Origin: Paraphysomonas bandaiensis
Lineage: Eukaryota > Protista > Chrysophyceae
Length of the DNA: 64,000 bases
Assembly: GCA_965644295.1 (NCBI GenBank)
Contig: CBFFRP010000002.1
Location: 62,001 to 126,000 of the forward strand
Reading direction: 5' to 3'
Position numbers and translations under genes: made by a program. Each line of letters opens with the position of its first letter. The stretch's first letter is position 1. The notes beneath the pieces are model-generated. The model saw only the letters and a program-made list of their open reading frames with translations, did no database searches and was not told where the DNA came from. This document shows, piece by piece, positions 1,760-53,200 of this stretch.

Positions 1760-2100
1760 GCGTGGTGAACTTCGAAGGCCATATAAAGAGCGATAAAGTT
1801 TCAAGCAATGTCCTGGTGGCAACTAAAAATCTGAAGGAGGGTCCATGTACACGCCTCCTTCGATTTTAGCGTAGCATAATGCATTAGACACGTCAAGTTT
1901 ATGGATATGCATATCAATAATAAACGCCAGTGCAATGATTAGCCGAACGGTAATCGATTCCACCAAAGAAGCAAATGTATTTGCAAGATCTATACCTGAT
2001 CGTTGAACATATCCCAGTATGAGATAAGCGATAAAACATATAATTTCACCTCTTTGACGTGTCTTGAGCTGGATTTCAGACCAACAGCTGCAGTGCAACA
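1760..2100 (-). pseudogene. Degenerate Ty1/copia reverse transcriptase fragment
   Basis: Translation ...TFASLVESITVRLIIALA...IHKLDVSNALCYAKIEGGVYMDPPSDF*LPPGHCLKLYRSLYGLRSSPR matches copia RT motifs (TFAPV..., H.LDV.NAF, VYM..P.GF, LKKSLYGLKQSPR) with an in-frame stop. Confidence 0.85.
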
Positions 2101-4446
2101 AGACGAGCATTGATGATAATTCACCTCTCTTGTCTGCAGTGACCAGAGCCATAAACGCCACAATCGGGCCTTTCCGTACCACGTCTCTCGTAGTCTTAAA
2201 AAAAAAACTTCGTCCGCGTGATACGATTCAATCAGATCGTAGTACTCTTCAACTGATGGATCCAGCGGGTCAGTTTTAACTATGGCCTCTTCAAGCTTCC
2301 CATAGTACTCCTTATCCCATGGGGTATACTTGTATACTCTAATCAAACAGGACCTTGACTGATACTTCTTCTGAGACATCAAGTCATGCAGGGCAGATTC
2401 GATATAAACAACTGCCTGAATGCTACGCTAAGTTAAGCTAGTTAGCTAGCTAGGTGCTCTAGATTGATTCATATGAACTTATATAAAACGCAATCTTGAA
2501 ATACATGGACTTTGCTTATTCTAATTTACTTGTACAGTTTTACACAAATTACCAAAAAGAACATGATTATTACCATATATATCGAATAGTGAAATAGGCA
2601 TAATTTTGAATATAACATATCTATACGAAATAATCGAATTAGAACGTCATATACAGCGCAAACAAAACAACGACATACAGTAATATTTATATTTTTCGAT
2701 ACATATGCCGCGTAAATAGGTATATAAGTACAACTAAACCAACATCACACATAAGAATTGCATATATAAAAAAATTCAAGAAAATTAAATGGAAATGATA
2801 AAAATGATTAAGTGCCAAAAAAGCTATCTTGATCCTACTTCCCGATGCTTATTTGAACTTTCTCTGATTTCTACATATCACCAAAATTACGTCAAATATA
2901 TGATATATGCACCGGCAGGTATACAGTTTCAAGCATCACACAGACCTTTATAGTGCACCCTTACAATTCCTCCTTCTGGTTCTGATCCTACTGCCACTAC
3001 TGGACTCTCTTTCATCCTCTGGTTGCCATTCCTCATAAGTGAAAAACGATTAGATGGTCATAAGTCGATGTAACCGCTAAACCTGTTGAAATTTCGAAAA
3101 AGACGATTTAACTTGAGCGTATGGTACGTATTGGAATAATTAATTCAGTAGGTGTGAAGAGAACATGTTTGCAATGACATTAATAAAATTATATCAATTA
3201 CTGATCAAAAATATGTTAAATGAAAAAGTTACATTTTACATAACATGTGTACTATAGTGCTATATAATACAAAGGTTATTGATTAGTTAAAAGTACTTAC
3301 AATCGACAATCAATCGATCTTCTGTCACGTTTTCCTGTAAGAATACATGCAGAATATACTGCACCAGTGTCAGTCAACTCCTGATTACATAGAAATAAAT
3401 GAGAAATAACAATACATATTATTATGTATATATATGACATTCATATCGCAGCATGTACTGCACGATTGTTCGAATATTTCCGTCGTTATCGACCTGAACC
3501 TCATACGTCCCTCTGCCGCTGTATGAGTGAACTGCACAACTTAGCTGATAAGGGTTCTTCACCAAAGCACCAATCTCAAACTCCTGCGGTACAATTTCAT
3601 TAGCACTTGTACCTTTATCACCGCTACCATTAGAAGACATATTATATCGGTAAAACTTCAGTGTCATATCAAAAAATAGAGGTGAGTGGTGCGTCGTTCT
3701 TTGCTGTGGGAGCAGCAGCCCACTCTGATACAGCGCAACGAATTGACAGCACTGAGCCTTTATACTCCACTACTGTGTGTCGGGGTCTCTCCTCTCACTC
3801 CTCGGCTATGGTGTCAATAACTTCACTGCTGAGGCACAAGCGGACAACACAAGACCAAGATATCGACTCCGGGACCAAATGGTTAGCTTGCTGGCACTCA
3901 CTAGCTTGTCACAGACCCAGAGCGAAGGCATGATATAAGTAATCTTGCAGGCAGCTTGCCCTCCCTTGCCTTGAAAGCTTATTCTGCTTATCAACTTCCA
4001 TCCACCTCCACAGTCTTATTCATGCGGTTGCTACAGTGGCTCTTGTTATAAGAGTGATACTACGTCAGTATTCACCGTATATAGTATGACATAGTCAGCA
4101 TCCATACAAAGCCGTTACCTCATCATAACACCTCTGATGACATCACACTCAGACCATTCAACGCTATTGGAGGACTGCCAATACATAGATAGACAGATAT
4201 CTGATTGCAGATCTCATTCACAGTCATATCAGCTGCGTGTGTGTGTGTGCTGCTACTGCTCTGTACTGATGTAGAGTGCCTTTCAACCCCCTCTATTCCT
4301 CAGTCCATTGAGGGTGCAGAGAAGAGTGTTGTCCCTCCTTTACAAGATCACCACATGATCAGGATACAGCAACATCTTGCATATCTATACACATGTACTG
4401 TAGGCTTGGACCTTTTTTTTCGCATAAAACCCCCAATTTTATATAT

Positions 4447-4547
4447 CATACATACATACATACATACATACATACATACATACATACAGCTGCTGTACAT
4501 ACATAAATACATACATACATACATACATACATACATACATACATACA

Positions 4548-4578
<31 letters not shown>

Positions 4579-5012
4579 CATACATACATACATACATACA
4601 TACATACATACATACATACATACATACATACATACATACATACATACATACATACATACATACATACATACATACATACATACATACATACATACATACA
4701 TACATACATACATACATACATACATACATACATACATACATACATACATACATACATACATACATACATACATACATACATACATACATACATACATACA
4801 TACATACATACATACATACATACATACATACATACATACATACATACATACATACATACATACATACATACATACATACATACATACATACATACATACA
4901 TACATACATACATACATACATACATACATACATACATACATACATACATACATACATACATACATACATACATACATACATACATACATACATACATACA
5001 TACATACATACA

Positions 5013-5046
<34 letters not shown>

Positions 5047-5070
5047 CATACATACATACATACATACATA
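4447..5070 (+). repeat. (TACA)n microsatellite, ~620 bp
   Basis: Direct reading; few interruptions (TACAGCTGCTGTA at 4485-4497). Confidence 0.99.
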
Positions 5071-5259
5071 CTGTACGTTTCTGTCAACTTTTATCCACGC
5101 ACTCGTTTTTCCACAAAAACACTCTCTCCACACCCATTCCGACGACTCTCCAATTCTGACACGAGCATTCCACAAGCATTCCATTCTACCCCTGGCGGAC
5201 TCAAATTATACCCACAACTCCATTACACTGTACAATATGTAACAATATGGCTGCAGCTC
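5071..5259 (+). repeat. Left TIR (189 bp), includes ATG and first 13 nt of the transposase
   Basis: Inverted identity to 8259-8447 ends after ATGGCTGCAGCTC. Confidence 0.9.
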
Positions 5260-6203
5260 CTGTATTGGATCTTTCTGAAGACTTCATTTATGATCATCCG
5301 GTGTTTCGAATTGATCACAGACTTGTTGAGCATGAGCCTGTTGAGGCAGAGGAAGGAATATCACAACATGGTTTGTCTAGGCATCAATATACAGTATTGT
5401 TTTGGTACAAATGTTGTTTTAAGGATACCACTCTGCTTGAATGCGCAGAGTTTCTGAGAATTGTTTGCAACGTGACTGTGAGCCGATCCACAGTGTGCAG
5501 AGCACTCCTCCGACTTGGTTTCAAGAAAAAGCATATGAAGTACATCGCCAAGTATCTTGACGAGAATGATAGAGTGGCATTTTGGGTCAATCCGCCTGAT
5601 CATTCACTGCGACCGGGTGTGCTTGGGGTTTATTATCGGGACATTGTGGACCTAGACGAAAGCGGCTTTTACGTCTCCAATTCACGGCGTGTCTGTGGTC
5701 ACTCTCTTGGGAGCACCTCAAGCAGTTCTATTGGAAACAAAGCCCGCATGCTGCCCCACTACTCATTGCTAGTTGCTATCGACGCTCGCAAAGGTGTGAT
5801 CAACAACATATTTTATCCACATGGCACAACTTCGGAGGTATTCTACCACTTTGTTGTGTACCTGTTAATTCCCAGTCTTGAGGGTACTGGGAGACGTGTC
5901 ATTACAATGGATCGCTTGAGTGCTCATTTTGGAGTTGTGGTCAAAGCTCTAACGGATGCTGGACATTATGTTGTCTTTCGTCCTGCTTCGTCCCCTACCT
6001 TTGCACCAGTGGAATGGGTATTCAGTTACGTGGACAAGTTTCTTCAAGAGCATAGTCCACAAGTCACGCCCAATTCATTAAAGTTTTGGTTAAGGACGGC
6101 TTTGGATACAATTAGTAGGTTTGACGTCAAACAGTATATGGCAGCTGCACACTTTTATGTCCCGACGTATCCGTACACACCTTACCGCGGTGAACAATCA
6201 TAG
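5247..6203 (+). CDS. IS630/Tc1-like DDE transposase (318 aa, DD33E)
   Basis: HTH DTTLLECAEFLRIVCNVTVSRSTVCRALLRLGFKKK; D1 in IVDLDESGF; D2 in VITMDRLSAH; E in PASSPTFAPVEWVF (cf. PxxSPDLNPIE); 33 residues between D2 and E; intact intronless ORF. Confidence 0.92.
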   Translation: MAAAPVLDLSEDFIYDHPVFRIDHRLVEHEPVEAEEGISQHGLSRHQYTVLFWYKCCFKDTTLLECAEFLRIVCNVTVSRSTVCRALLRLGFKKKHMKYIAKYLDENDRVAFWVNPPDHSLRPGVLGVYYRDIVDLDESGFYVSNSRRVCGHSLGSTSSSSIGNKARMLPHYSLLVAIDARKGVINNIFYPHGTTSEVFYHFVVYLLIPSLEGTGRRVITMDRLSAHFGVVVKALTDAGHYVVFRPASSPTFAPVEWVFSYVDKFLQEHSPQVTPNSLKFWLRTALDTISRFDVKQYMAAAHFYVPTYPYTPYRGEQS

Positions 6204-6729
6204 GGGTGCTATGTGGTTGTAGTGCACGTTGTGACTGCGCTGCACTTAGTATTTATTAATCTGGTTATTTATTCTTAACTATTCTAAATTATTATTCTTA
6301 AGTAATTTGGAACAGTATATTGCAATACCTTGCAAATGATATTAATCTGTTTAATATATTATTAGCTATATGTCGGTGGAATGCTTTTCACTTTTCACAT
6401 TGTAATTATATGATATGTTACTAGTTTCATACGAAATTGAAAGCGCAGTGCTCACGGCAATAGTGATGAGAGTAAGCTTGTGTAATTTGGGCTCAAAATG
6501 AGTCCATTAAAAATTTGGGTGAATGTGTGATTATTACACAGTTCTAGTGATGACATAATATGATTAATAATTAATACATTAATTAACAATAATAAAATTT
6601 ATATAAAACTTCTTGACAACGATTGAATAATAATAACAGCGAAAAGCAATAATAATAAAAGGCTATATCTGGAATCAGCAGGCTATAATAAGAAAACAAA
6701 CTAATAAGAAAAGACACAATGCTAAGGGT

Positions 6730-8271
6730 CTACTCCGGGAAAGTGCCATCTGAAGTGGGCTCCAGCTTCAGCTCATTCAAATCATGAACTAAATCAGGCC
6801 TCAACACAACCACCACCGCATTGACAGCAGCCACACAACCTTTCAAGTCCATCTCTGTATCGTGACTGTACGCGTTATTTGGCGACAGTGGAGCCGACAC
6901 TGGATGTAGCAGGGAAAAAATTCTGTCCGCAAGCCGCTTGTTTTCTGAGACACTGATGGTGAGGAGTCGTGCGATTGTTTCTTTGCAGTCCTCATATAAC
7001 ACCTGGGCCTCTCTTCCTATATTTAAAGCAACAAAGTGAGCGTACAACTGTTGTCTGAAGAATGTCAGGAAAGTCACAGTCTCCTCACGGGCCTGGAGTT
7101 CAACTGCACTCAGCTCAGGGGCACTGGTTGGAGCACAACCGTTCTCCTCCATGCGGCGTCTTTTGGCAGCCAACCCATCGTCTGCATTAGGAATGTCTGT
7201 AACTCCCTCCACATATTCCGGTGGAGCCGAAGCAACCGCGCGCACAGATGCGTCGTCCAGTGCCTTTCGTTGCTCCTCTGTTAATAGGCGCACAGCATTA
7301 TGTCGGGAAATGGTTGCAATCAAAGACTTAATCGGAACATCCATATCAATGGCCGCCTCAAGATTCTTCATGGTTTCAACTAATCGGTAGGTGGCATGGG
7401 GATGAAGTAAAAAAGATCGTTGGTCCGTCTGGTCTTTCTGGTGTTCTTCCCGAACTCTGGACATAACTGCATCTGATGCCCCGCAACGCTCAAGAAATCC
7501 AGGTGCTTGGCGCTCCAACTCTGACAGCACAATGTATCCATCCGGCTCTTGCAGGAGTTTATTCAAATGAATTAGAGCAAAGTTATTGACCTCAAAAGAC
7601 GCTCTAGTGCTGTTCATTCGAGTCTGCTCGGCCAGTGCATTCATGTAAATCTGTCGCCGCTTCTTATCGTACTCCGAGATGACTTCAGCATGCTGTGGAT
7701 ACTTAGGGTAGGGACAATCCGACCACGGATCAGGCTGAATCCTAAACTCAACACTATGGGGCGCCACATTGCATACGGGACAGCTACACTTCACTTTAAC
7801 AATTAAATCACAACCCTTGCACCTGCCCATTGGAGGTATGAATGTGGTGGCGTTGCTGATGGGGCAGTCGTGCCTTAATGCTGCTTGCAACTCCGCACTC
7901 GACATGCACACAGGACAACGAGTGCACTCCAAGCGATCATCTTTACTTGCTTTTTTCATCTCTGCGGCTTTGCAGTAGAACACGTCGTCCCTTTCTTCGT
8001 CATTTGTTATTGGTAGCCGTCGAACATCTTTCTTTGCGCGCACGTGTTTCAGGAATCCCTTCCAGATGGTATAATGATGAAGACACCCAGGACACCTCAC
8101 ACCATCTTGTGGTGGATTTCTTGTGTTCGATTTGAACCTTTCCTGCCCACCGTGAAGTACGGTGTGTTCTGGAACAACATCGCGGAGTGATGGGAGGTGA
8201 GCGGCCACCAAATTCTCGGAAGGAGCAAACACGAATATATCGCCACCATCGTGGTGATGAGCTGCAGCCAT
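6730..8271 (-). CDS. Transposon-borne 513-aa protein of unknown function: N-terminal Cys clusters/zinc-finger-like motifs, putative NLS
   Basis: Long intact intronless ORF inside the TIRs; CPGCLHHYTIWKGFLKH (C2H2-like spacing, second His absent), CTRCPVC, CKGC, CSCPVC; AKRRR; predicted helical C-terminal half. Confidence 0.8.
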   Translation of the reverse strand: MAAAHHHDGGDIFVFAPSENLVAAHLPSLRDVVPEHTVLHGGQERFKSNTRNPPQDGVRCPGCLHHYTIWKGFLKHVRAKKDVRRLPITNDEERDDVFYCKAAEMKKASKDDRLECTRCPVCMSSAELQAALRHDCPISNATTFIPPMGRCKGCDLIVKVKCSCPVCNVAPHSVEFRIQPDPWSDCPYPKYPQHAEVISEYDKKRRQIYMNALAEQTRMNSTRASFEVNNFALIHLNKLLQEPDGYIVLSELERQAPGFLERCGASDAVMSRVREEHQKDQTDQRSFLLHPHATYRLVETMKNLEAAIDMDVPIKSLIATISRHNAVRLLTEEQRKALDDASVRAVASAPPEYVEGVTDIPNADDGLAAKRRRMEENGCAPTSAPELSAVELQAREETVTFLTFFRQQLYAHFVALNIGREAQVLYEDCKETIARLLTISVSENKRLADRIFSLLHPVSAPLSPNNAYSHDTEMDLKGCVAAVNAVVVVLRPDLVHDLNELKLEPTSDGTFPE

Positions 8272-8447
8272 ATTGTTACATATCGTACAGTGTAATGGAG
8301 TTGTGGGTATAATTTGAGTCCGCCAGGGGTAGAATGGAATGCTTGTGGAATGCTCGTGTCAGAATTGGAGAGTCGTCGGAATGGGTGTGGAGAGAGTGTT
8401 TTTGTGGAAAAACGAGTGCGTGGATAAAAGTTGACAGAAACGTACAG
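8259..8447 (-). repeat. Right TIR (189 bp), includes ATG and first 13 nt of ORF2
   Basis: Reverse complement of 5071-5259. Confidence 0.9.
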
Positions 8448-9823
8448 TATGTATGTATGTATGTATGTATGTATGTATGTATGTATGTATGTATGTATGT
8501 ATGTATGTATGTATGTATGTATGTATGTATGTATGTATGTATGTATGTATGTATGTATGTATGTATGTATGTATGTATGTATGTATGTATGTATGTATGT
8601 ATGTATGTATGTATGTATGTATGTATGTATGTATGTATGTATGTATGTATGTATGTATGTATGTATGTATGTATGTATGTATGTATGTATGTATGTATGT
8701 ATGTATGTATGTGTATGTATGTATGTATGTATGTATGTATGTATGTATGTATGTATGTATGTATGTATGTATGTATGTATGTATGTATGTATGTATGTAT
8801 GTATGTATGTATGTATGTATGTATGTATGTATGTATGTATGTATGTATGTATGTATGTATGTATGTATGTATGTATGTATGTATGTATGTATGTATGTAT
8901 GTATGTATGTATGTATGTATGTATGTATGTATGTATGTATGTATGTATGTATGTATGTATGTATGTATGTATGTATGTATGTATGTATGTATGTATGTAT
9001 GTATGTATGTATGTATGTATGTATGTATGTATGTATGTATGTATGTATGTATGTATGTATGTATGTATGTATGTATGTATGTATGTATGTATGTATGTAT
9101 GTATGTATGTATGTATGTATGTATGTATGTATGTATGTATGTATGTATGTATGTATGTATGTATGTATGTATGTATGTATGTATGTATGTATGTATGTAT
9201 GTATGTATGTATGTATGTATGTATGTATGTATGTATGTATGTATGTATGTATGTATGTATGTATGTATGTATGTATGTATGTATGTATGTATGTATGTAT
9301 GTATGTATGTATGTATGTATGTATGTATGTATGTATGTATGTATGTATGTATGTATGTATGTGTATGTATGTATGTATGTATGTATGTATGTATGTATGT
9401 ATGTATGTATGTATGTATGTATGTATGTATGTATGTATGTATGTATGTATGTATGTATGTATGTATGTATGTATGTATGTATGTATGTATGTATGTATGT
9501 ATGTATGTATGTATGTATGTATGTATGTATGTATGTATGTATGTATGTATGTATGTATGTATGTATGTATGTATGTATGTATGTATGTATGTATGTATGT
9601 ATGTATGTATGTATGTATGTATGTATGTATGTATGTATGTATGTATGTATGTATGTATGTATGTATGTATGTATGTATGTATGTATGTATGTATGTATGT
9701 ATGTATGTATGTATGTATGTATGTATGTATGTATGTATGTATGTATGTATGTATGTATGTATGTATGTATGTATGTATGTATGTATGTATGTATGTATGT
9801 ATGTATGTATGTATGTATGTATG

Positions 9824-9854
<31 letters not shown>

Positions 9855-9951
9855 TGTATGTATGTATGTATGTATGTATGTATGTATGTATTTATGTATG
9901 TACAGCAGCTGTATGTATGTATGTATGTACTGTGCAGCAGCTGTATGTATG
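8448..9951 (-). repeat. (TATG)n = reverse (TACA)n microsatellite, ~1.5 kb
   Basis: Direct reading. Confidence 0.99.
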
Positions 9952-11771
9952 ATATATAAAATAGGGGGTTTTATGCGAAAAAAAAGGTCCAAGCCTACAG
10001 TACATGTGTATAGATATGCAAGATGTTGCTGTATCCTGATCATGTGGTGATCTTGTAAAGGAGGGACAACACTCTTCTCTGCACCCTCAATGGACTGAGG
10101 AATAGAGGGGGTTGAAAGGCACTCTACATCAGTACAGAGCAGTAGCAGCACACACACACACGCAGCTGATATGACTGTGAATGAGATCTGCAATCAGATA
10201 TCTGTCTATCTATGTATTGGCAGTCCTCCAATAGCGTTGAATGGTCTGAGTGTGATGTCATCAGAGGTGTTATGATGAGGTAACGGCTTTGTATGGATGC
10301 TGACTATGTCATACTATATACGGTGAATACTGACGTAGTATCACTCTTATAACAAGAGCCACTGTAGCAACCGCATGAATAAGACTGTGGAGGTGGATGG
10401 AAGTTGATAAGCAGAATAAGCTTTCAAGGCAAGGGAGGGCAAGCTGCCTGCAAGATTACTTATATCATGCCTTCGCTCTGGGTCTGTGACAAGCTAGTGA
10501 GTGCCAGCAAGCTAACCATTTGGTCCCGGAGTCGATATCTTGGTCTTGTGTTGTCCGCTTGTGCCTCAGCAGTGAAGTTATTGACACCATAGCCGAGGAG
10601 TGAGAGGAGAGACCCCGACACACAGTAGTGGAGTATAAAGGCTCAGTGCTGTCAATTCGTTGCGCTGTATCAGAGTGGGCTGCTGCTCCCACAGCAAAGA
10701 ACGACGCACCACTCACCTCTATTTTTTGATATGACACTGAAGTTTTACCGATATAATATGTCTTCTAATGGTAGCGGTGATAAAGGTACAAGTGCTAATG
10801 AAATTGTACCGCAGGAGTTTGAGATTGGTGCTTTGGTGAAGAACCCTTATCAGCTAAGTTGTGCAGTTCACTCATACAGCGGCAGAGGGACGTATGAGGT
10901 TCAGGTCGATAACGACGGAAATATTCGAACAATCGTGCAGTACATGCTGCGATATGAATGTCATATATATACATAATAATATGTATTGTTATTTCTCATT
11001 TATTTCTATGTAATCAGGAGTTGACTGACACTGGTGCAGTATATTCTGCATGTATTCTTACAGGAAAACGTGACAGAAGATCGATTGATTGTCGATTGTA
11101 AGTACTTTTAACTAATCAATAACCTTTGTATTATATAGCACTATAGTACACATGTTATGTAAAATGTAACTTTTTCATTTAACATATTTTTGATCAGTAA
11201 TTGATATAATTTTATTAATGTCATTGCAAACATGTTCTCTTCACACCTACTGAATTAATTATTCCAATACGTACCATACGCTCAAGTTAAATCGTCTTTT
11301 TCGAAATTTCAACAGGTTTAGCGGTTACATCGACTTATGACCATCTAATCGTTTTTCACTTATGAGGAATGGCAACCAGAGGATGAAAGAGAGTCCAGTA
11401 GTGGCAGTAGGATCAGAACCAGAAGGAGGAATTGTAAGGGTGCACTATAAAGGTCTGTGTGATGCTTGAAACTGTATACCTGCCGGTGCATATATCATAT
11501 ATTTGACGTAATTTTGGTGATATGTAGAAATCAGAGAAAGTTCAAATAAGCATCGGGAAGTAGGATCAAGATAGCTTTTTTGGCACTTAATCATTTTTAT
11601 CATTTCCATTTAATTTTCTTGAATTTTTTTATATATGCAATTCTTATGTGTGATGTTGGTTTAGTTGTACTTATATACCTATTTACGCGGCATATGTATC
11701 GAAAAATATAAATATTACTGTATGTCGTTGTTTTGTTTGCGCTGTATATGACGTTCTAATTCGATTATCAG

Positions 11772-11772
11772 A

Positions 11773-11806
<34 letters not shown>

Positions 11807-12164
11807 CATACATACATACATACATACATACATACATACATACATACATACATACATACATACATACATACATACATACATACATACATACATACATACA
11901 TACATACATACATACATACATACATACATACATACATACATACATACATACATACATACATACATACATACATACATACATACATACATACATACATACA
12001 TACATACATACATACATACATACATACATACATACATACATACATACATACATACATACATACATACATACATACATACATACATACATACATACATACA
12101 TACATACATACATACATACATACATACATACATACATACATACATACATACATACATACATACA

Positions 12165-12198
<34 letters not shown>

Positions 12199-12317
12199 CA
12201 TACATACATACATACATACGTACATACATACATACATACATACATACATACATACATACATACATACATACATACATACATACATACATACATACATACA
12301 TACATACATACATACAT
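11772..12317 (+). repeat. (TACA)n microsatellite, ~545 bp
   Basis: Direct reading. Confidence 0.99.
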
Positions 12318-22100: not shown

Positions 22101-25100
22101 TGGTTATGATATATCTATACCTGGTTGTGTTATATCTCTATGTGGCTATTATATATCTATACCCGGTTATGTTATATCTATACCTGGTTATGTTATATAC
22201 ATCTGGTTATGTTATATCTATACCTGGTTGTGTTATATCTCTATGTGGCTATGATATATCTATACCTGGTTATGTTATATCTATACCTGGTTGTGTTATA
22301 TCTATACCTGGTTATGTTATGTTTATACCTGGTTATGTTATATTTATACCTGGCTATGTTATATCTATACCTGGTTATGTTATATTCATACCTGGCTATG
22401 TTATATTTATACCTGGTTATGTTATATCTATACCTGGTTATGTTATATCTATACCTGGTTATGTTATATCTATACCTGGTTATGTTATATCTATACCTGG
22501 CTATGTTATATTTATACCTGGTTATGTTATATTTATACCTGGTTCTGTTATATTTATACCTGGTTATGTTATATCTATTCCTTGTATGTTATATACATCT
22601 GGTTATGCTATATCTATTCCTGGTTATGTTATATCTATTCTTGGTTATGTTATATTCATACCTGGTTATGTTATATCTATACCTGGTTGTGTTATATCTC
22701 TATGTGGCTATTATATATCTATACCCGGTTATGTTATATCTATACCTGGTTATGTTATATACATCTGGTTATGTTATATCTATACCTGGTTGTGTTATAT
22801 CTCTATGTGGCTATGATATATCTATACCTGGTTATGTTATATCTATACCTGGTTATGTTATATCTATACCTGGTTATGTTATATTCATACCTGGCTATAT
22901 TATATTTATACCTGGCTATGTTATATTTATACCTGGTTATGTTATGTTTATACCTGGTTATGTTATATTTATACCTGGTTATGTTATATCTATACCTGGT
23001 TATGTTATATTCATACCTGGCTATGTTATATTTATACCTGGTTATGTTATATTTATACCTGGTTATGTTATATTTATACCTGGTTATGTTATATCTCTAT
23101 GTGGCTATGATATATCTATACCTGGTTATGTTATATCTATACCTGGTTATGTTATATCTATACCTGGTTATGTTATATTCATACCTGGCTATATTATATT
23201 TATACCTGGCTATGTTATATTTATACCTGGTTATGTTATGTTTATACCTGGTTATGTTATATTTATACCTGGTTATGTTATATCTATACCTGGTTATGTT
23301 ATATTCATACCTGGCTATGTTATATTTATACCTGGTTATGTTATATTTATACCTGGTTATGTTATATCTATACCTGGTTATGTTATATCTATTCCTTGTA
23401 TGTTATATACATCTGGTTATGTTATATCTATACCTGGTTATGTTATATTCATACCTGGTTATGTTATGTTTATACCTGGTTATGTTATATTTATACCTGG
23501 TTATGTTATATTTATACCTGGTTATGTTATATCTATTCCTTGTATGTTATATACATCTGGTTATGCTATATCTATTCCTGGTTATGTTATATCTATTCCT
23601 GGTTATGTTATATTCATACCTGGTTATGTTATATCTATACCTGGTTGTGTTATATCTCTATGTGGCTATTATATATCTATACCCGGTTATGTTATATCTA
23701 TACCTGGTTATGTTATATACATCTGGTTATGTTATATCTATACCTGGTTGTGTTATATCTCTATGTGGCTATGATATATCTATACCTGGTTATGTTATAT
23801 CTATACCTGGTTACGTTATATTTATACCTGGTTATGTTATATATATCTGGTTATGTTATATTTATACTTGGTTATGGTATATCTATAGCTAGTTATGTTA
23901 TATATATACCTGGTTATGTTATATTTATATGTGGTTATGTTGTAGTTATATGTGCTTGTGTTATATTTATATTTGTAGACCGCCTCGAGAGTGGAATACT
24001 ATTTACCACTCCATTTATCAGTAATGCAGGCATTCAAATGCTTGTTTTGACTAAAACTCCGTCAGTTTACGACAAGGCACTGTTAATATTTAAACCTTTT
24101 ACTAAAGAAATGTGGGTGACTACCTTCGTGATGATAGTATTCGTCGCGGCGACACTGCGATTTAGCGAGCGTACAGGTGCAGAATTGCGGTCCATTAGAC
24201 AACATATTATGGCATTGGAAAGCATTCCGATATCAGGTATTTAGCTATCTGTTGTGACGACCGCAGTGACGTCCGCTGATGTAGATATGAGGAAAACATT
24301 AACGACAAAGGAAAATATTTTTAGCTCCAAGAAGGAATCTGCTGTGGGGTGGACTCTCAATCAATTTTTTTCTGATATTCCGACCTATATATACACTTCT
24401 TGGCTGACCATCACCGCTCATAGCTCACACACTTCTGACGTAAAGGGTACTGGTATGAGCACTAAGGCATTGGTTTTGAATGCTTTCTTCTGTTTCTTTG
24501 GAATGGTATGGGTGTTGGGATATACTGCCAACCTTGCTGCGATCCTTGGAGACCAGTCGGGGGAAACCGAGTTGAGCACTTTGGAGCAAATGAATTCAAG
24601 GCTACTTACAGCAGCTGTTACTGCGAACACCGCGTATGCTGCTGCCATGGCCGTGTCGTTTCCCAACATCAAGCAGATTGGATTCGGGAACTTAAACGGT
24701 GCTTTAAATTGCCTCGAGACGGAAAAGTGTCATGCGTTGGTAGAATCTTCCATACTTTTAGAAGCTCTTCAGAATGGTGCCATTGATATTGAATCCGATA
24801 GTCACAGGCGCCAACACTGCATCAACAAAGATAATGATCAAGATAGAGAGCTGAGGTTGGTTGGCTTACCTCGCCAACAGGGTTACACCGAAATATCCGT
24901 GGGAATCCACAGAGATTATCCGAAACTACGGGATGTGTTATCCTACTGGATCACCGTATTTCGCACATGTGAACCGGACAGTGCTACAAGTGCGTGCTAT
25001 GCAGGCATTAACATGGGCCGTTCGTTTGACAGTTTGACGGATATTCATGTTCGGAAAAACCGGTGTGAACAATCAAAGCCAGCATTCTGGGATAATAGTA

Positions 25101-26071
25101 GCAAAGGAGCGAATTTGAAGCTCGGAGTTGTCAATTTCTTGTTTCCCATTGCTGTTGTTGTAGCTATTGGACTTCTAATGATCACCAATGAATTGGTTAA
25201 TATATACGACTGGGGATTCTTGGAGGCAATGTACTGTACAAGAGATATCCGAGAAGTTGTTAATAAATGCATTTTTGACAAATCATTTCTAAGAAAAGTG
25301 GAATCAAACGACAAATCGGCACTGCAATGGGCGACCAGCATTACAAGGGATCAGTACTTGTCATTCGCGATGAAGAACTATTCAAGTGACAAAGTGCTCG
25401 ATATATCGTTCATACTTTCTTCTTGGTGGAAATCGCCAAATGTGCGCGAGATGTTTCTTGGTCCTTTGAAAAAGCATTATTTAGCTACAGACATTCGAGC
25501 ACTATTTTTTCTACGCTGGAGCGTTAAAAAACTAGAACATGAACTGAAATTCCTGACATGTCAAGCCCCCAATAATCGTCGACTTATTTTACTAAAAAGT
25601 CGATCGTCAAAGCATATGTATCATCACAGTGCCAACGATGACGCAAGTGATGTTCGAAACAAACTGGAAAACGAAGAGTATGGACGAGTAGGCTTTCAAG
25701 TGGAAGACAGCGAGAATTGCTATGGTTTTGAAGGGGTACGACAAAAATCACTTACAGAGAAACGGATTAAACTTTACCTTTTGGACCAAGCGCTACTACT
25801 GAGGCGTGCCATTGGCGAAGTTATCCGCATCAGCAACTCAAAGACTGTGAAAACTCACACTTCTGAATCATCACTTGCGTCGATACTATCTCGCGCGTAC
25901 GACTCACCTAAAGCGTTCCGCTCATTTACATCTGTGCTGGAAACTGCAGAATCTACGGAGTCTAAATGTGAAATCAAGTCGGCATCATCAAGTGATAACA
26001 TATTTTCGAGGAGTCCTACTAACGAGACCTCGCCGCCTGGATGTTCGGATGATATGTATAGTATTTTATAA
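19136..26071 (+). CDS. Ionotropic glutamate receptor-like (GLR-type) channel, copy A, no ATD (exons 19136-19475, 19548-19595, 23979-24236, 24285-26071)
   Basis: Signal peptide; S1 VVHDPPF...GLIIDHIQLISSHAGFTYEL, R...ILFTTPF; M1 IFKPFTKEMW; M3 gate GYTANLAAIL (cf. SYTANLAAF); S2; M4. All junctions GT-AG and phase-compatible. Confidence 0.88.
19615..23975 (+). repeat. 21-bp minisatellite (TATACCTGGTTATGTTATATC variants) filling intron 2 of iGluR-like copy A
   Basis: Direct reading; a 1337-bp higher-order duplication is visible (identical ORF starts at 20727/22064, 20788/22125, 20954/22291). Confidence 0.97.
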
Positions 26072-27079: not shown

Positions 27080-27459
27080 GCTACGAAAGCTGCTTGTGCG
27101 TCGCCGCAAGCACCAAGGTGCGACCACTTCCGCTCTGAGTTCTTAAAGTGAACATCCCGGATGCTTTACTTCAGCAGGCAGCCCAATACCCCGGTTACCC
27201 TTCAGGTGGGCCCTGTCCCGGATGCCCTTGAGGTGGGCCCATTCCCGGATGCCTGTTTATTCGTCAGGGCCCAAAGACGTCTACATAAGTAACACTTAGT
27301 GGTGTCCCTTGTACCACACAAGCATTCGACTATGATTGGGCAGAAGAATATCTGCTGACTATGTTTGCGGCTCACGTTAGCTTCCCAGAGAAAATCTCTC
27401 CGGTACTTATCCCCCAGAATACCACGAAAAGGTGCGAGTCCGACTTTGTTGAGGGGGAA
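27080..27459 (-). mobile_element. Dispersed ~380-bp repeat, copy 1 (probable retroelement relic)
   Basis: Inverted homolog of 42314-42691 (shared CTCAACAAAGTCGGACTCGCACCTTTTCGTGGT, GACGAATAAACAGGCATCCGGGAATG, CCCACCTCAAGGGCATCCGGG); a third short fragment at ~26404-26432. Confidence 0.7.
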
Positions 27460-50235: not shown

Positions 50236-53200
50236 TTACAACATACTAGTCATATCTTTCGAAAATCGAATGGACGAGACCTCATTTACAGGCCTGTTTG
50301 AAAAAATATTATCATATGATGGTGCGGACTTGGTTTCACATTTAGACTCTGTAGGTACTGTATTATCCAGTACAACAGATGAATGTGAATGGACCCGTAT
50401 AGGTGGGCTATACGTGCGAGACATTATCGAAGCTAGTGATGATTCAGAATTGTGAGTACTCACAGTCTCTGAGTTGTTAATACGGATAACTTCGCCAATG
50501 GCACGCCTTAGTAGCAGTGCTTGGTCTAAGAGGTAAAGTTTAATTCGTTTCTCCGTAAGAGTTTTTTCGCGTACCCCTTCGAAACCGTAACAATTCTCAC
50601 TGTCTTCAATATGAAAGCCCAATCGTTCATATTCTTTGCTCTCCAGTTTGTTTTGAACATCACTTGCGTCGTCACTGTGATGATACATATGCTTTGACGA
50701 TCGACTTTTTAGTAAAATATGTCGACGATTATTGGGGGCTTGGCATGTCAGGAACTTCAGTTCATGCTCTAGTTTTTTAACGCTCCAGCGTAGAATAAAT
50801 AGTGCTCGAATATCCGTGGCTAAATAATGCTTCTTCAAAGGACCAAGAAACATCTCGCGTACATTTGGTGACTTCCACCAAGAAGAAAGTATAAACGTAA
50901 TATCGAGCACCTTGTCACTTGAATTGTCCTTCGTATCATACGACAAGTACTGATCGTTTCTTGCATTGCTGGTCACCCATTTCAGTGCCAGTTTGTTGTT
51001 TAATTCCACACTTGCTAGAAAAGATTTATCTACAATGCATCTATTAACCACTTCTCGGATATCTCTTGTACAGAACATCACTGTCAAGAAGCCCCAGTTA
51101 CATATATTAAACACTTCTTTAATGATCATGAGGGCGCCAACAGATACAACAACAGCAATAGGAAACAAGAAATTGTAAACATCGAGTTTTAAAAACTCTC
51201 CTTCGCCACCATAATCCCAGAAAGTAGGCTTCAAATGCCCACATCGGTCCTTCCGAACATGAAAATCCGTCAGACTGTCAAACGAACGGCCCATCCCAGC
51301 ACCTGAGTAGCACGCACTTGTAACACTGTCCGGTTCACACGTGCGAAATGCGGTGATCCAGTAGGATAACACATCCCGAAGTTCCGGGTAGTCACTGTGA
51401 ATTCCCACGGCCATATCGGTGTATCCCTGTTGGCGAGGTGAGCCAACCAACCTCAGCTCTTGGTTGTTGTCCCTATCCGTGCAGTACTGACGCATGGGAC
51501 TATCGGATTCAATATCAATGGCACCATTCTGAAGAGCTTCTAAAAGTATAGAAGCCTCCACCAACGCATGACACTTCTCCGTCTCGAGGCATCTTAAAGC
51601 ATCCTTGAAGTTTCCGAATCCAATCTGCTTGATATTTGGAAACGACACGGCCATAGCAGCAGCATATGCGGTGTTCGGAGTAACAGCTGCGGAACGAGAC
51701 TTCATGTTCAATTGCTCCAATGTGTTCCACTCGGTTTCCCCCGACCGGTCTCCAAGGATCGCAGCAAGGTTGGCAGTATATCCCAACACCCATACCATAC
51801 CAAAGAAACAGAAGAAAGCATTCAAAACTAATGCCTTAGTGCTCATACCAGTACCCTCTACGTCAGAAGTGTGTGAGCTATGAGCGGTGATGGTCAGCCA
51901 AGAAGTGTATATATAGGTCGGAATATCAGAAAAAAATTGATTGATAGTCCACCCCATAGCAGATTCTTTCTTGGAGCTAAAAATATTTTCTTTAATTGAA
52001 AATATTTTCCTCATATCTACATCAGCGGACGTCACTGCGGTCGTCACAACATATAGCTAAATACCTGATATCGGAATGCTTTCCAATGCCAAAATATGTT
52101 GTTCGGTGGACCGCAATTCTGCGCCTGTGCGCTCACTAAATCTCAGTGTCGCCGCGACGAATACTACCATCACGAAGGTAGCCACCCACATTTCTTTAGT
52201 AAAAGGTTGAAAGAGTAACAGCGCCTTGTCGTAAAATGACGGAGTTTGAGTCAAAACAAGCATTTGAATGCCTGTATTACTGATAAATGGAGTGGTAAAT
52301 AGTATTCCACTCTCGAGGCGGTCTACAAATATAAATATAACACAAGCACATATAAATATAACATAACCACATATTAATATAACATAACCACATATTAATA
52401 TAACATAACCAGGTATAGATATAACACAAGCACATATAAAATATAACATAAACACATATAAATATAACATAAACACATATAAATATAACGTAAACACATA
52501 CAAATATAACATAAACACATACAAATATAACATAACCACATATAAATATACACAAACACATAACCAGATTAACTAGGTTTAAAGCATAACCAGATATATA
52601 TAACATAACCAGATGTAAATAACATAACCAGGAATAGATATAACATAACCACAGGTATAGATATAGCATAACCAGGTATATATAACACAAACACATATAA
52701 ATATAGCATAACCAGATGTAAATAAAATAACCAGGTATAGATATAACATAACCAGGTATATATATAACATAACCAGGTATCGATATAACATAACCAGGTA
52801 TATATAACATAACCAGATATATATAACACAACCAGGTATAGATATAACATAAGCAGATGTATATAACACAAACACATATAAATATAGAATAACCAGGTCT
52901 ATATAACACAACCAGGTATAGATATAACATAACCAGGAATAGATATAACATAACCAGGTATATATAACATAACCAGGTATCGATATAACATAACCAGGTA
53001 TAAAATAGCATAACCAAGTATAGATATAACATAAGCAGATGTATATAACACAAACACATATAAATATAGCATAACCAGGTCTATATAACACAACCAGGTA
53101 TAGATATAACATAACCAGGTATCGATATAACATAACCAGATGTAAATAACATAACCAGGTATAGATATAACATAACCAGGTATATATAACATAACCAGAT

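Follow-up and report, generated by a model that had tools for sequence, protein, structure and literature searches.

A TA-flanked DDE_3 transposon of Paraphysomonas bandaiensis with a second, convergent gene and start codons within its terminal inverted repeats

Results

Structure of the element

The window analyzed here, a stretch of 64,000 nucleotides from contig CBFFRP010000002.1 of the chrysophyte Paraphysomonas bandaiensis (assembly GCA_965644295.1), contains an element of 3,377 bp, which reaches from one terminal inverted repeat (TIR) to the other (window positions 5071-8447) and encloses two intact open reading frames (ORFs) facing each other. ORF1 codes for a DDE transposase, ORF2 for a cysteine-rich protein (Table 1), and the spacer on which they converge has a GC content of 29% versus 45-50% for the ORFs. 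The element begins with CTGTACG and ends with CGTACAG, with a TA directly outside of each terminus. Its two TIRs differ at a single position (A at 5234 versus the complement of 8284), and the match between them stops after ATGGCTGCAGCTC, i.e., 13 nt inside each coding sequence (CDS). Both TIRs hold the same leader, the start codon and the first four codons, and both proteins begin with MAAA. A TATA-like sequence, ATTATAC, is located approximately 40 nt 5′ of the transposase ATG within the left TIR. An earlier interpretation made from the DNA sequence alone (hereafter called the sequence-only reading) had described the TA-bounded ends, TIRs of 189 bp ending 13 nt into both CDSs, an intact 318-aa DDE transposase and an intact 513-aa Cys-rich ORF converging on an AT-rich spacer of 526 bp, as well as the upstream DNA and N-terminus common to both ORFs, and all of these features were found to be present.

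The heptamer ACTGTAC at the boundary of the element occurs again at position 5227, just 5′ of the ATG. Alignment of the TIR tip with the rest of the TIR yielded a score at the level of shuffled sequences (P about 0.6), which leaves an inverted repeat/direct repeat structure like that of the Sleeping Beauty-like Tc1 subgroup, with a second internal binding site in each TIR, without statistical support. No Rfam match was obtained anywhere in the element.

Table 1. Features of the element and of the palindrome surrounding it (window positions)
Feature	Position	Strand	Remarks
TA, left boundary (target-site duplication of the family)	5069..5070	.	TA at both ends of six full copies elsewhere
Left TIR, 189 bp: leader, ATG (5247), first 13 nt of the transposase CDS	5071..5259	+	188/189 identical to right TIR
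ORF1, 318-aa DDE transposase	5247..6203	+	Pfam DDE_3; triad D137, D222, E256
Convergent AT-rich spacer, 526 bp	6204..6729	.	polyA-signal-like hexamers on both strands; ends of RNA contigs
ORF2, 513-aa Cys-rich conserved protein	6730..8271	-	intact in 8/10 copies; 29 homologues
Right TIR, 189 bp: leader, ATG (8271), first 13 nt of the ORF2 CDS	8259..8447	-	188/189 identical to left TIR
TA, right boundary	8448..8449	.	TA flanks of six full copies
Left palindrome arm (outside the element): 1.8-kb dispersed-repeat copy and (CATA)n 4447-5071	2630..5070		
Right palindrome arm (outside the element): (GTAT)n 8447-9929 and inverted 1.8-kb copy	8448..11768		

Copies in the genome

A search of the 62.6-Mb assembly with the 189-bp TIR revealed ten copies with paired ends on eight contigs. 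Aligned with the window copy from end to end, all ten are 99.2-100% identical to it; three subfamilies can be distinguished, and TIRs of 189 bp bound every full copy. Six full-length copies are located in unrelated flanks; each of them carries TA before CTGTACG on the left and TA after CGTACAG on the right, and the similarity of the flanks stops exactly at the termini. Because these six copies share the same boundaries, the ends of the element and the duplication of TA can be regarded as settled. The TA at the window copy is uninformative on its own, since the flanks there consist of a mirrored microsatellite.

Three other copies (L030 1001, L031 1301, and L033 4323; two of them on C433 and one on C259) lack TIR positions 1-35 and are all fused to one identical GC-rich foreign sequence. 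As the two copies on C433 have the same foreign junction and a spacing of about 5.96 kb (5,960 bp), this pair appears to go back to a tandem segmental duplication including the truncated element rather than to two independent insertions.

In four cases out of ten (window copy, L030, L031, and L033) the element adjoins (ATAC)n, and the flanks of the remaining copies resemble ATA|TAC; TA sites within this microsatellite may be favored targets. Additionally, solo pieces comprising the outer 41-53 nt of the TIR were observed in the window at 1307-1359 (preceded by TA) and elsewhere in the genome (C433:22628-22668 and 27119-27159; C111:178368-178408; C396:1-38), together with an inverted pair on C58, 213319-213359 (+) and 218785-218825 (-), 5.5 kb apart. 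These solo ends could belong to a different or non-autonomous element having the same termini.

The transposase

ORF1 matches the Pfam family DDE_3 (PF13358) with 34.3 bits at a gathering score of 28.6, and the NCBIfam equivalog of bacterial IS630 transposases (NF033545) with 38.2 bits (E 1.1e-9), which is below the cut-off of 100 bits for that family. On the basis of these profile scores, ORF1 appears to be related to the bacterial IS630 family while standing outside of it. The catalytic residues are spaced 84/33 (DD33E) and are invariant across eight aligned relatives. A helix-turn-helix (HTH) motif precedes the catalytic core; the first HTH is complete in the distant relatives P0007, L071, and L075, and the window protein retains its last helix alone (FRIDHRL). 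Relatives of the transposase at 35-55% identity were found on short metagenome contigs only. ORF1 is intact in all ten copies, and the substitutions among them are five synonymous and no nonsynonymous ones (P = 6e-4 for an expectation of 23% synonymous sites).

The transposase profile also weakly detects other DDE_3 families of the genome (C134, C247, C551, C241, and C249), whose partner genes, if there are any, have no detectable kinship to ORF2.

The second gene

ORF2 is present in all ten copies. It is intact in eight of them, and the other two carry single-base deletions. Between the copies, five synonymous and four nonsynonymous substitutions were counted in ORF2, which corresponds to a ratio of nonsynonymous to synonymous substitution rates (dN/dS) of about 0.24 (P = 0.03); for changes common to several copies the numbers are five and two (P = 0.008). 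The sequence-only reading had named co-occurrence of the ORFs in TA-flanked copies, dN/dS and a single-locus or host-gene origin as the points on which ORF2 could be judged, and on each of them the results speak for a gene of the element: profile searches of the genome detected ORF2-like sequence only in the element family, at the locus C169 described below and in a few decayed fragments, with no ordinary host gene family.

An exhaustive HMMER search of 1.84 billion representative proteins revealed 29 relatives of ORF2, all of them nameless metagenome proteins. In an alignment of 19 members, 14 cysteine and histidine residues are invariant wherever covered (C60, C63, C100, C116, C119, C122, H134, C136, C151, C154, C162, C164, C167, and H172), a number that would suffice for about three predicted zinc sites. 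Given the intact copies, the excess of synonymous change, the invariant Cys/His residues and the homologues, ORF2 has to be regarded as a conserved partner and not as a chance ORF.

Neither ORF2 nor any of the 19 family members yielded a Pfam or NCBIfam match, a word-indexed protein search with ORF2 gave zero matches, and the family profile produced only noise against PDB sequences. AlphaFold2 with the family alignment predicted the structure of ORF2 with a mean predicted local distance difference test score of 78 (about 90 over residues 10-200). In this model, an N-terminal Cys/His-rich beta/alpha module (about residues 55-175) is followed by a middle part made of helices, and a linker predicted to be disordered (about 350-385) leads to a bundle of helices at the C-terminus (about 385-495). 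In terms of language-model features, residues 50-190 are nearest to clusters of C2H2-type zinc fingers (0.93-0.94), with few features in common, so that this similarity serves as a lead only. Prediction of a complex of transposase and ORF2 returned a score of 0.00, with alignments unused and the fold of the partner uncertain, and has no bearing on binding in either direction. The idea that ORF2 merely substitutes for the lost first HTH of the transposase was rejected, since relatives that retain this HTH also have ORF2.

Relatives with the same layout

Five diverged metagenome contigs carry a homologue of ORF2 in convergent orientation with a DDE_3-type transposase. For four of them (L037, L071, L072, and L075) the identity to the transposase is 50, 36, 41, and 38%, and that to ORF2 29% (E 2e-24, ORF2 residues 202-458), 28, 24, and 32%, respectively; on the fifth one, the P0025 contig, the homologue faces a called DDE_3 gene. 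Judged from these sequences, the convergent two-gene layout is conserved and old in the clade. It is rare within the superfamily, yet recurrent in distant relatives.

RNA evidence

Words (k-mers) of the element occur in sequencing runs of at least 12 studies, including polyA metatranscriptomes from sea water and a hydrothermal vent. In one polyA metatranscriptome (X8), a contig covering 5230-6285 spans ORF1 and a contig covering 6609-8288 spans ORF2, and runs of three further studies contain contigs over parts of both genes. In the four runs, contigs end at 6285, 6462, and 6468 when coming from the left and at 6609 when coming from the right, no contig of any run crosses 6469-6608, and the RNA contigs aligned to the element have no splice joints. 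This pattern fits two unspliced convergent mRNAs ending in the spacer, which probably holds the 3′ ends of both transcripts. The weight of this observation is lessened by the nature of the data, as the runs are assembled contigs from which strand, transcript ends and expression level cannot be read and in which carry-over of DNA is possible.

At 5230 and 8288 the X8 contigs end in mirror-image positions. These ends were considered as symmetric start sites and rejected as such: both lie exactly 30 nt (k-1) beyond the last TIR-identical base and thus represent breaks of the de Bruijn graph (k = 31). The same reasoning applies to the shared ends of the L071 (30 nt) and L075 (55 nt) contigs.

A further X8 contig of 919 nt (contig 14) matches the element at 5551-5587 and 6000-6022 only; between these two stretches its sequence is diverged but has the same length. 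It represents a transposase family that is related to that of the element and is expressed in this sample, too.

The palindrome and other features of the window

The window copy sits in the center of a 9.1-kb palindrome (2630-11768), whose inverted repeat runs outward past the TIR tips. Its arms (2630-4456 and 9942-11768; 1,827 nt) are 100% identical, and the (ATAC)n arrays between arms and TIRs are unequal, with lengths of 625 and 1,483 bp. Either the sequence around the transposon was duplicated in inverted orientation very recently, or the palindrome is an artefact of the assembly. The arm sequence (2630-4440 and 9958-11768) belongs to a dispersed repeat (about 1.64 kb), of which the genome contains at least 20 further copies at 73-84% identity; the two arm copies are mutually identical and only about 81% identical to the other ones. 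An additional (ATAC)n array is located at 11772-12317.

ORF fragments at 1823-2382 (-) resemble a Copia-type reverse transcriptase with the motif KLDVSNALCYAKIEGGVYMDPP and are, going by this motif, probably a retrotransposon remnant. Two long ORFs, 24254-26071 (+) and 50236-52047 (-), match the ligand-gated ion channel family PF00060 with 32.7 and 27.5 bits, respectively, of which only the first passes the cut-off of 30.8. Other host ORFs of the window contain PH/TPR, NOB1 zinc-ribbon, FWWh, and WW domains. The host ORFs of the window indicate a eukaryote with few introns.

Discussion

A two-component transposon

The element is, with high confidence, an autonomous and recently active DNA transposon of the IS630-Tc1-mariner (ITm) type, which resides in a marine protist and encodes, with ORF2, a partner that is under selection. 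The sequence-only reading had proposed a two-component ITm family, and its classification as a TA-duplicating DDE_3 transposon with two components is supported by the copies, their TIRs, the TA duplication, the DDE_3 match and the retention of ORF2.

Start codons within the TIRs

A TIR that includes the start codons of both genes is also seen in L075, one of the distant relatives. The two ends of this contig share 55 nt, including the ATG and 17 further nt, and both products begin with MKDPRI. Within the shared stretch, the transposase begins on one side (MKDPRIFPRM...) and an exon of 20 codons on the other (MKDPRILHNE...). This exon is followed by an interval of 50 nt with GT...AG borders, beyond which the frame enters the ORF2 homologue, for which no other ATG is present. 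Since 55 nt is a usual assembler k-mer, the TIR of L075 is likely longer and probably extends outward past the contig end. With respect to these sequences, start codons in TIRs are a recurrent but non-universal feature of the clade.

What this arrangement means has to be weighed against the possibility that it is accidental, i.e., that the ends are homogenized by transposition or repair up to the point where the coding constraints differ, with the first four to seven codons being unconstrained and co-expression not being enforced. Several observations count against attaching a function to the shared start codons and could make their sharing a by-product of TIR homogenization. The residues coded within the TIR are not conserved, as the MAAA of the window element is replaced by MEAI in a related transposase with 91% identity (C282) and by MDTS in an ORF2 paralogue (C169), and the conserved blocks of both proteins start only near residue 10. 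Moreover, the shared ends of L071 comprise 30 nt, and unique leaders of at least 118 nt separate its TIR from the ATG on both sides. As the TIRs of L071 stop that far upstream of both ATGs, TIR-internal start codons do not define the clade. L075 speaks against an accident: there, in a distant lineage, the same arrangement arose or was retained with a different peptide, which is unlikely for a random TIR boundary, and any promoter in the TIR would be shared regardless of where exactly the identity ends. We therefore take the accidental origin seriously but hold it to be somewhat improbable.

In our reading, the TIR is the common upstream region of both genes throughout the clade, and its run past the ATG is tolerated since the first codons vary freely. 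Both genes would be read inward from near-identical upstream DNA, and a promoter within the TIR would turn both of them on and off together. Transposase bound to the TIRs could, in addition, damp both genes. That the symmetry of the TIRs might enforce co-expression of transposase and ORF2, as the sequence-only reading had inferred, is plausible.

ORF2 as partner or cargo

The second alternative concerns ORF2, which might be cargo, i.e., a captured or selfish passenger without any role in transposition or its control, perhaps with a cellular function of its own that outlives the transposon. Some loci in the genome and in metagenomes speak in this direction and against an obligatory pairing of the two genes. 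The single-copy locus C169 contains an intact ORF2 paralogue of 546 aa (L051 1456-3096 (+); C169:238617-240257), which is 34% identical over the full length (E 2e-90), beside a decayed transposase, the remnants of which lie in four pieces in convergent orientation (L051 3338-4320 (-); C169:240499-241481); no TIRs are left. The opposite case is the relic C282 (L067 1360-2811), which is 89% identical to the element overall; its left end is degraded and its transposase ORF (91% amino acid identity) intact. Here, similarity is lost in the middle of the spacer and unrelated sequence follows, with neither ORF2 nor a right TIR. Furthermore, the ORF2 homologues on L073 and L074 have no transposase within the available flank, and the analysis yielded no positive sign of an interaction between transposase and ORF2.

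Captured genes are normally lineage-specific, whereas ORF2 occupies an identical position in convergent orientation beside the same transposase clade in six lineages, down to an identity of about 24%, and the profile searches of the genome found no ordinary host family from which it could have been taken. For these reasons we consider it improbable that ORF2 is mere cargo. According to the preferred interpretation as an element-encoded partner, ORF2 would have been travelling with this transposase clade for as long as it took the ORF2 sequences to diverge to 20-45% identity. The paralogue at C169 is a candidate for a domesticated partner gene; its intactness hints that an ORF2-type protein is usable without a linked transposase, be it by action in trans or by domestication.

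A third alternative, an assembly artefact in the form of a chimeric palindromic join, is suggested by the location of the copy within perfectly identical arms and long (ATAC)n arrays, which long-read assemblers can produce, but it is very improbable for the element itself, which seven other contigs contain from one end to the other between unrelated, ordinary flanks and which occurs in contigs from the independent studies mentioned above, and since a fold-back would leave no non-palindromic center of 3 kb and the microsatellite arms differ in length, any doubt is limited to the palindrome and leaves the element unaffected.

Comparison with known systems

The features that define ITm elements, namely a TA duplication, a DDE_3 transposase and TIRs bounding the mobile unit, are all present. 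The element resembles Tc1/IS630-type members in these respects as well as in its DDE_3 triad, the HTH before the catalytic core and a length of about 3.4 kb, and differs from them by the addition of a second conserved convergent gene. In the named eukaryotic ITm groups, the second aspartate and the glutamate are separated by a spacing of 34-38, whereas this spacing is 33 in the window element. Unlike its relatives P0007, L071, and L075, the window protein has mostly lost the first HTH.

In terms of architecture, the element resembles maize MuDR of the Mutator superfamily, in which mudrA and mudrB are transcribed convergently from the TIRs. Common to both are two convergent genes, each beside a long near-identical TIR, a short intergenic region and a lineage-restricted second gene of unclear function. 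The likeness is architectural only, as MuDR has a MURA/MULE transposase and a 9-bp duplication, and the window element has DDE_3 and TA; neither a MURA-type transposase nor a 9-bp duplication was found here. Arabidopsis VANDAL elements, which are Mutator-like, carry the anti-silencing protein VANC. They are comparable to the window element as DNA transposons with an extra fast-evolving, lineage-specific gene that serves the element in a non-catalytic way, but they belong to a different superfamily, and no sequence or fold similarity was found; the analogy is a functional one only.

Within ITm, the ciliate TBE/Tec elements contain three ORFs, and a zinc-finger protein is among the ORFs of TBE (PMC7325037). 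They share with the window element an ITm-type transposase and extra coding capacity, for a zinc-finger protein in TBE and for a putative zinc-binding protein here, but differ in the number of ORFs (three versus two), in their arrangement and in having DD34E; ORF2 and the zinc-finger ORF of TBE are compared here by description only. The window DNA uses the standard code with long ORFs, which gives no indication of a ciliate host. Fanzor/TnpB cargo, which would have a RuvC-type nuclease domain, was excluded as an identity of ORF2, since no Pfam match was obtained for ORF2 and 19 family members and no Cas12/TnpB fold matched above noise. No description of such a family was found in the collection of papers searched, with Repbase and Dfam outside its scope.

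Possible functions of ORF2

Most likely, ORF2 would be an accessory factor that serves the element by binding nucleic acid or chromatin in a zinc-dependent manner, as judged from the predicted zinc module, the helical parts and the strict link to a single transposase clade. One observation that tempers any functional assignment is that the predicted fold matched none of the structures searched. Among the specific roles, an action on the element's own DNA as transposition cofactor or regulator is quite conceivable, at odds somewhat below even. A VANC-type anti-silencing factor, which would be suggested by analogy, appears possible to a lesser degree, and what remains falls to another selfish function or a passenger gene. 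The most far-reaching interpretation, which we put forward tentatively and consider unlikely to hold in all of its parts, is that of a new ITm clade of marine protists with a zinc-binding protein of new fold as obligatory second component, which would act as cofactor/regulator or in anti-silencing, would be co-expressed via TIR promoters and could be domesticated after decay of the transposase.

Implications

Tc1/mariner/IS630 elements are textbook one-gene transposons and form the basis of common gene-transfer tools. Retention of a second gene by one of their clades through deep divergence implies a function beyond that of the transposase, such as targeting, regulation or defense against silencing. 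With 14 invariant putative zinc ligands and no recognizable fold, the orphan family of ORF2 would yield a new structure. As the element is young and intact and both of its genes are intronless, it is amenable to direct functional testing.

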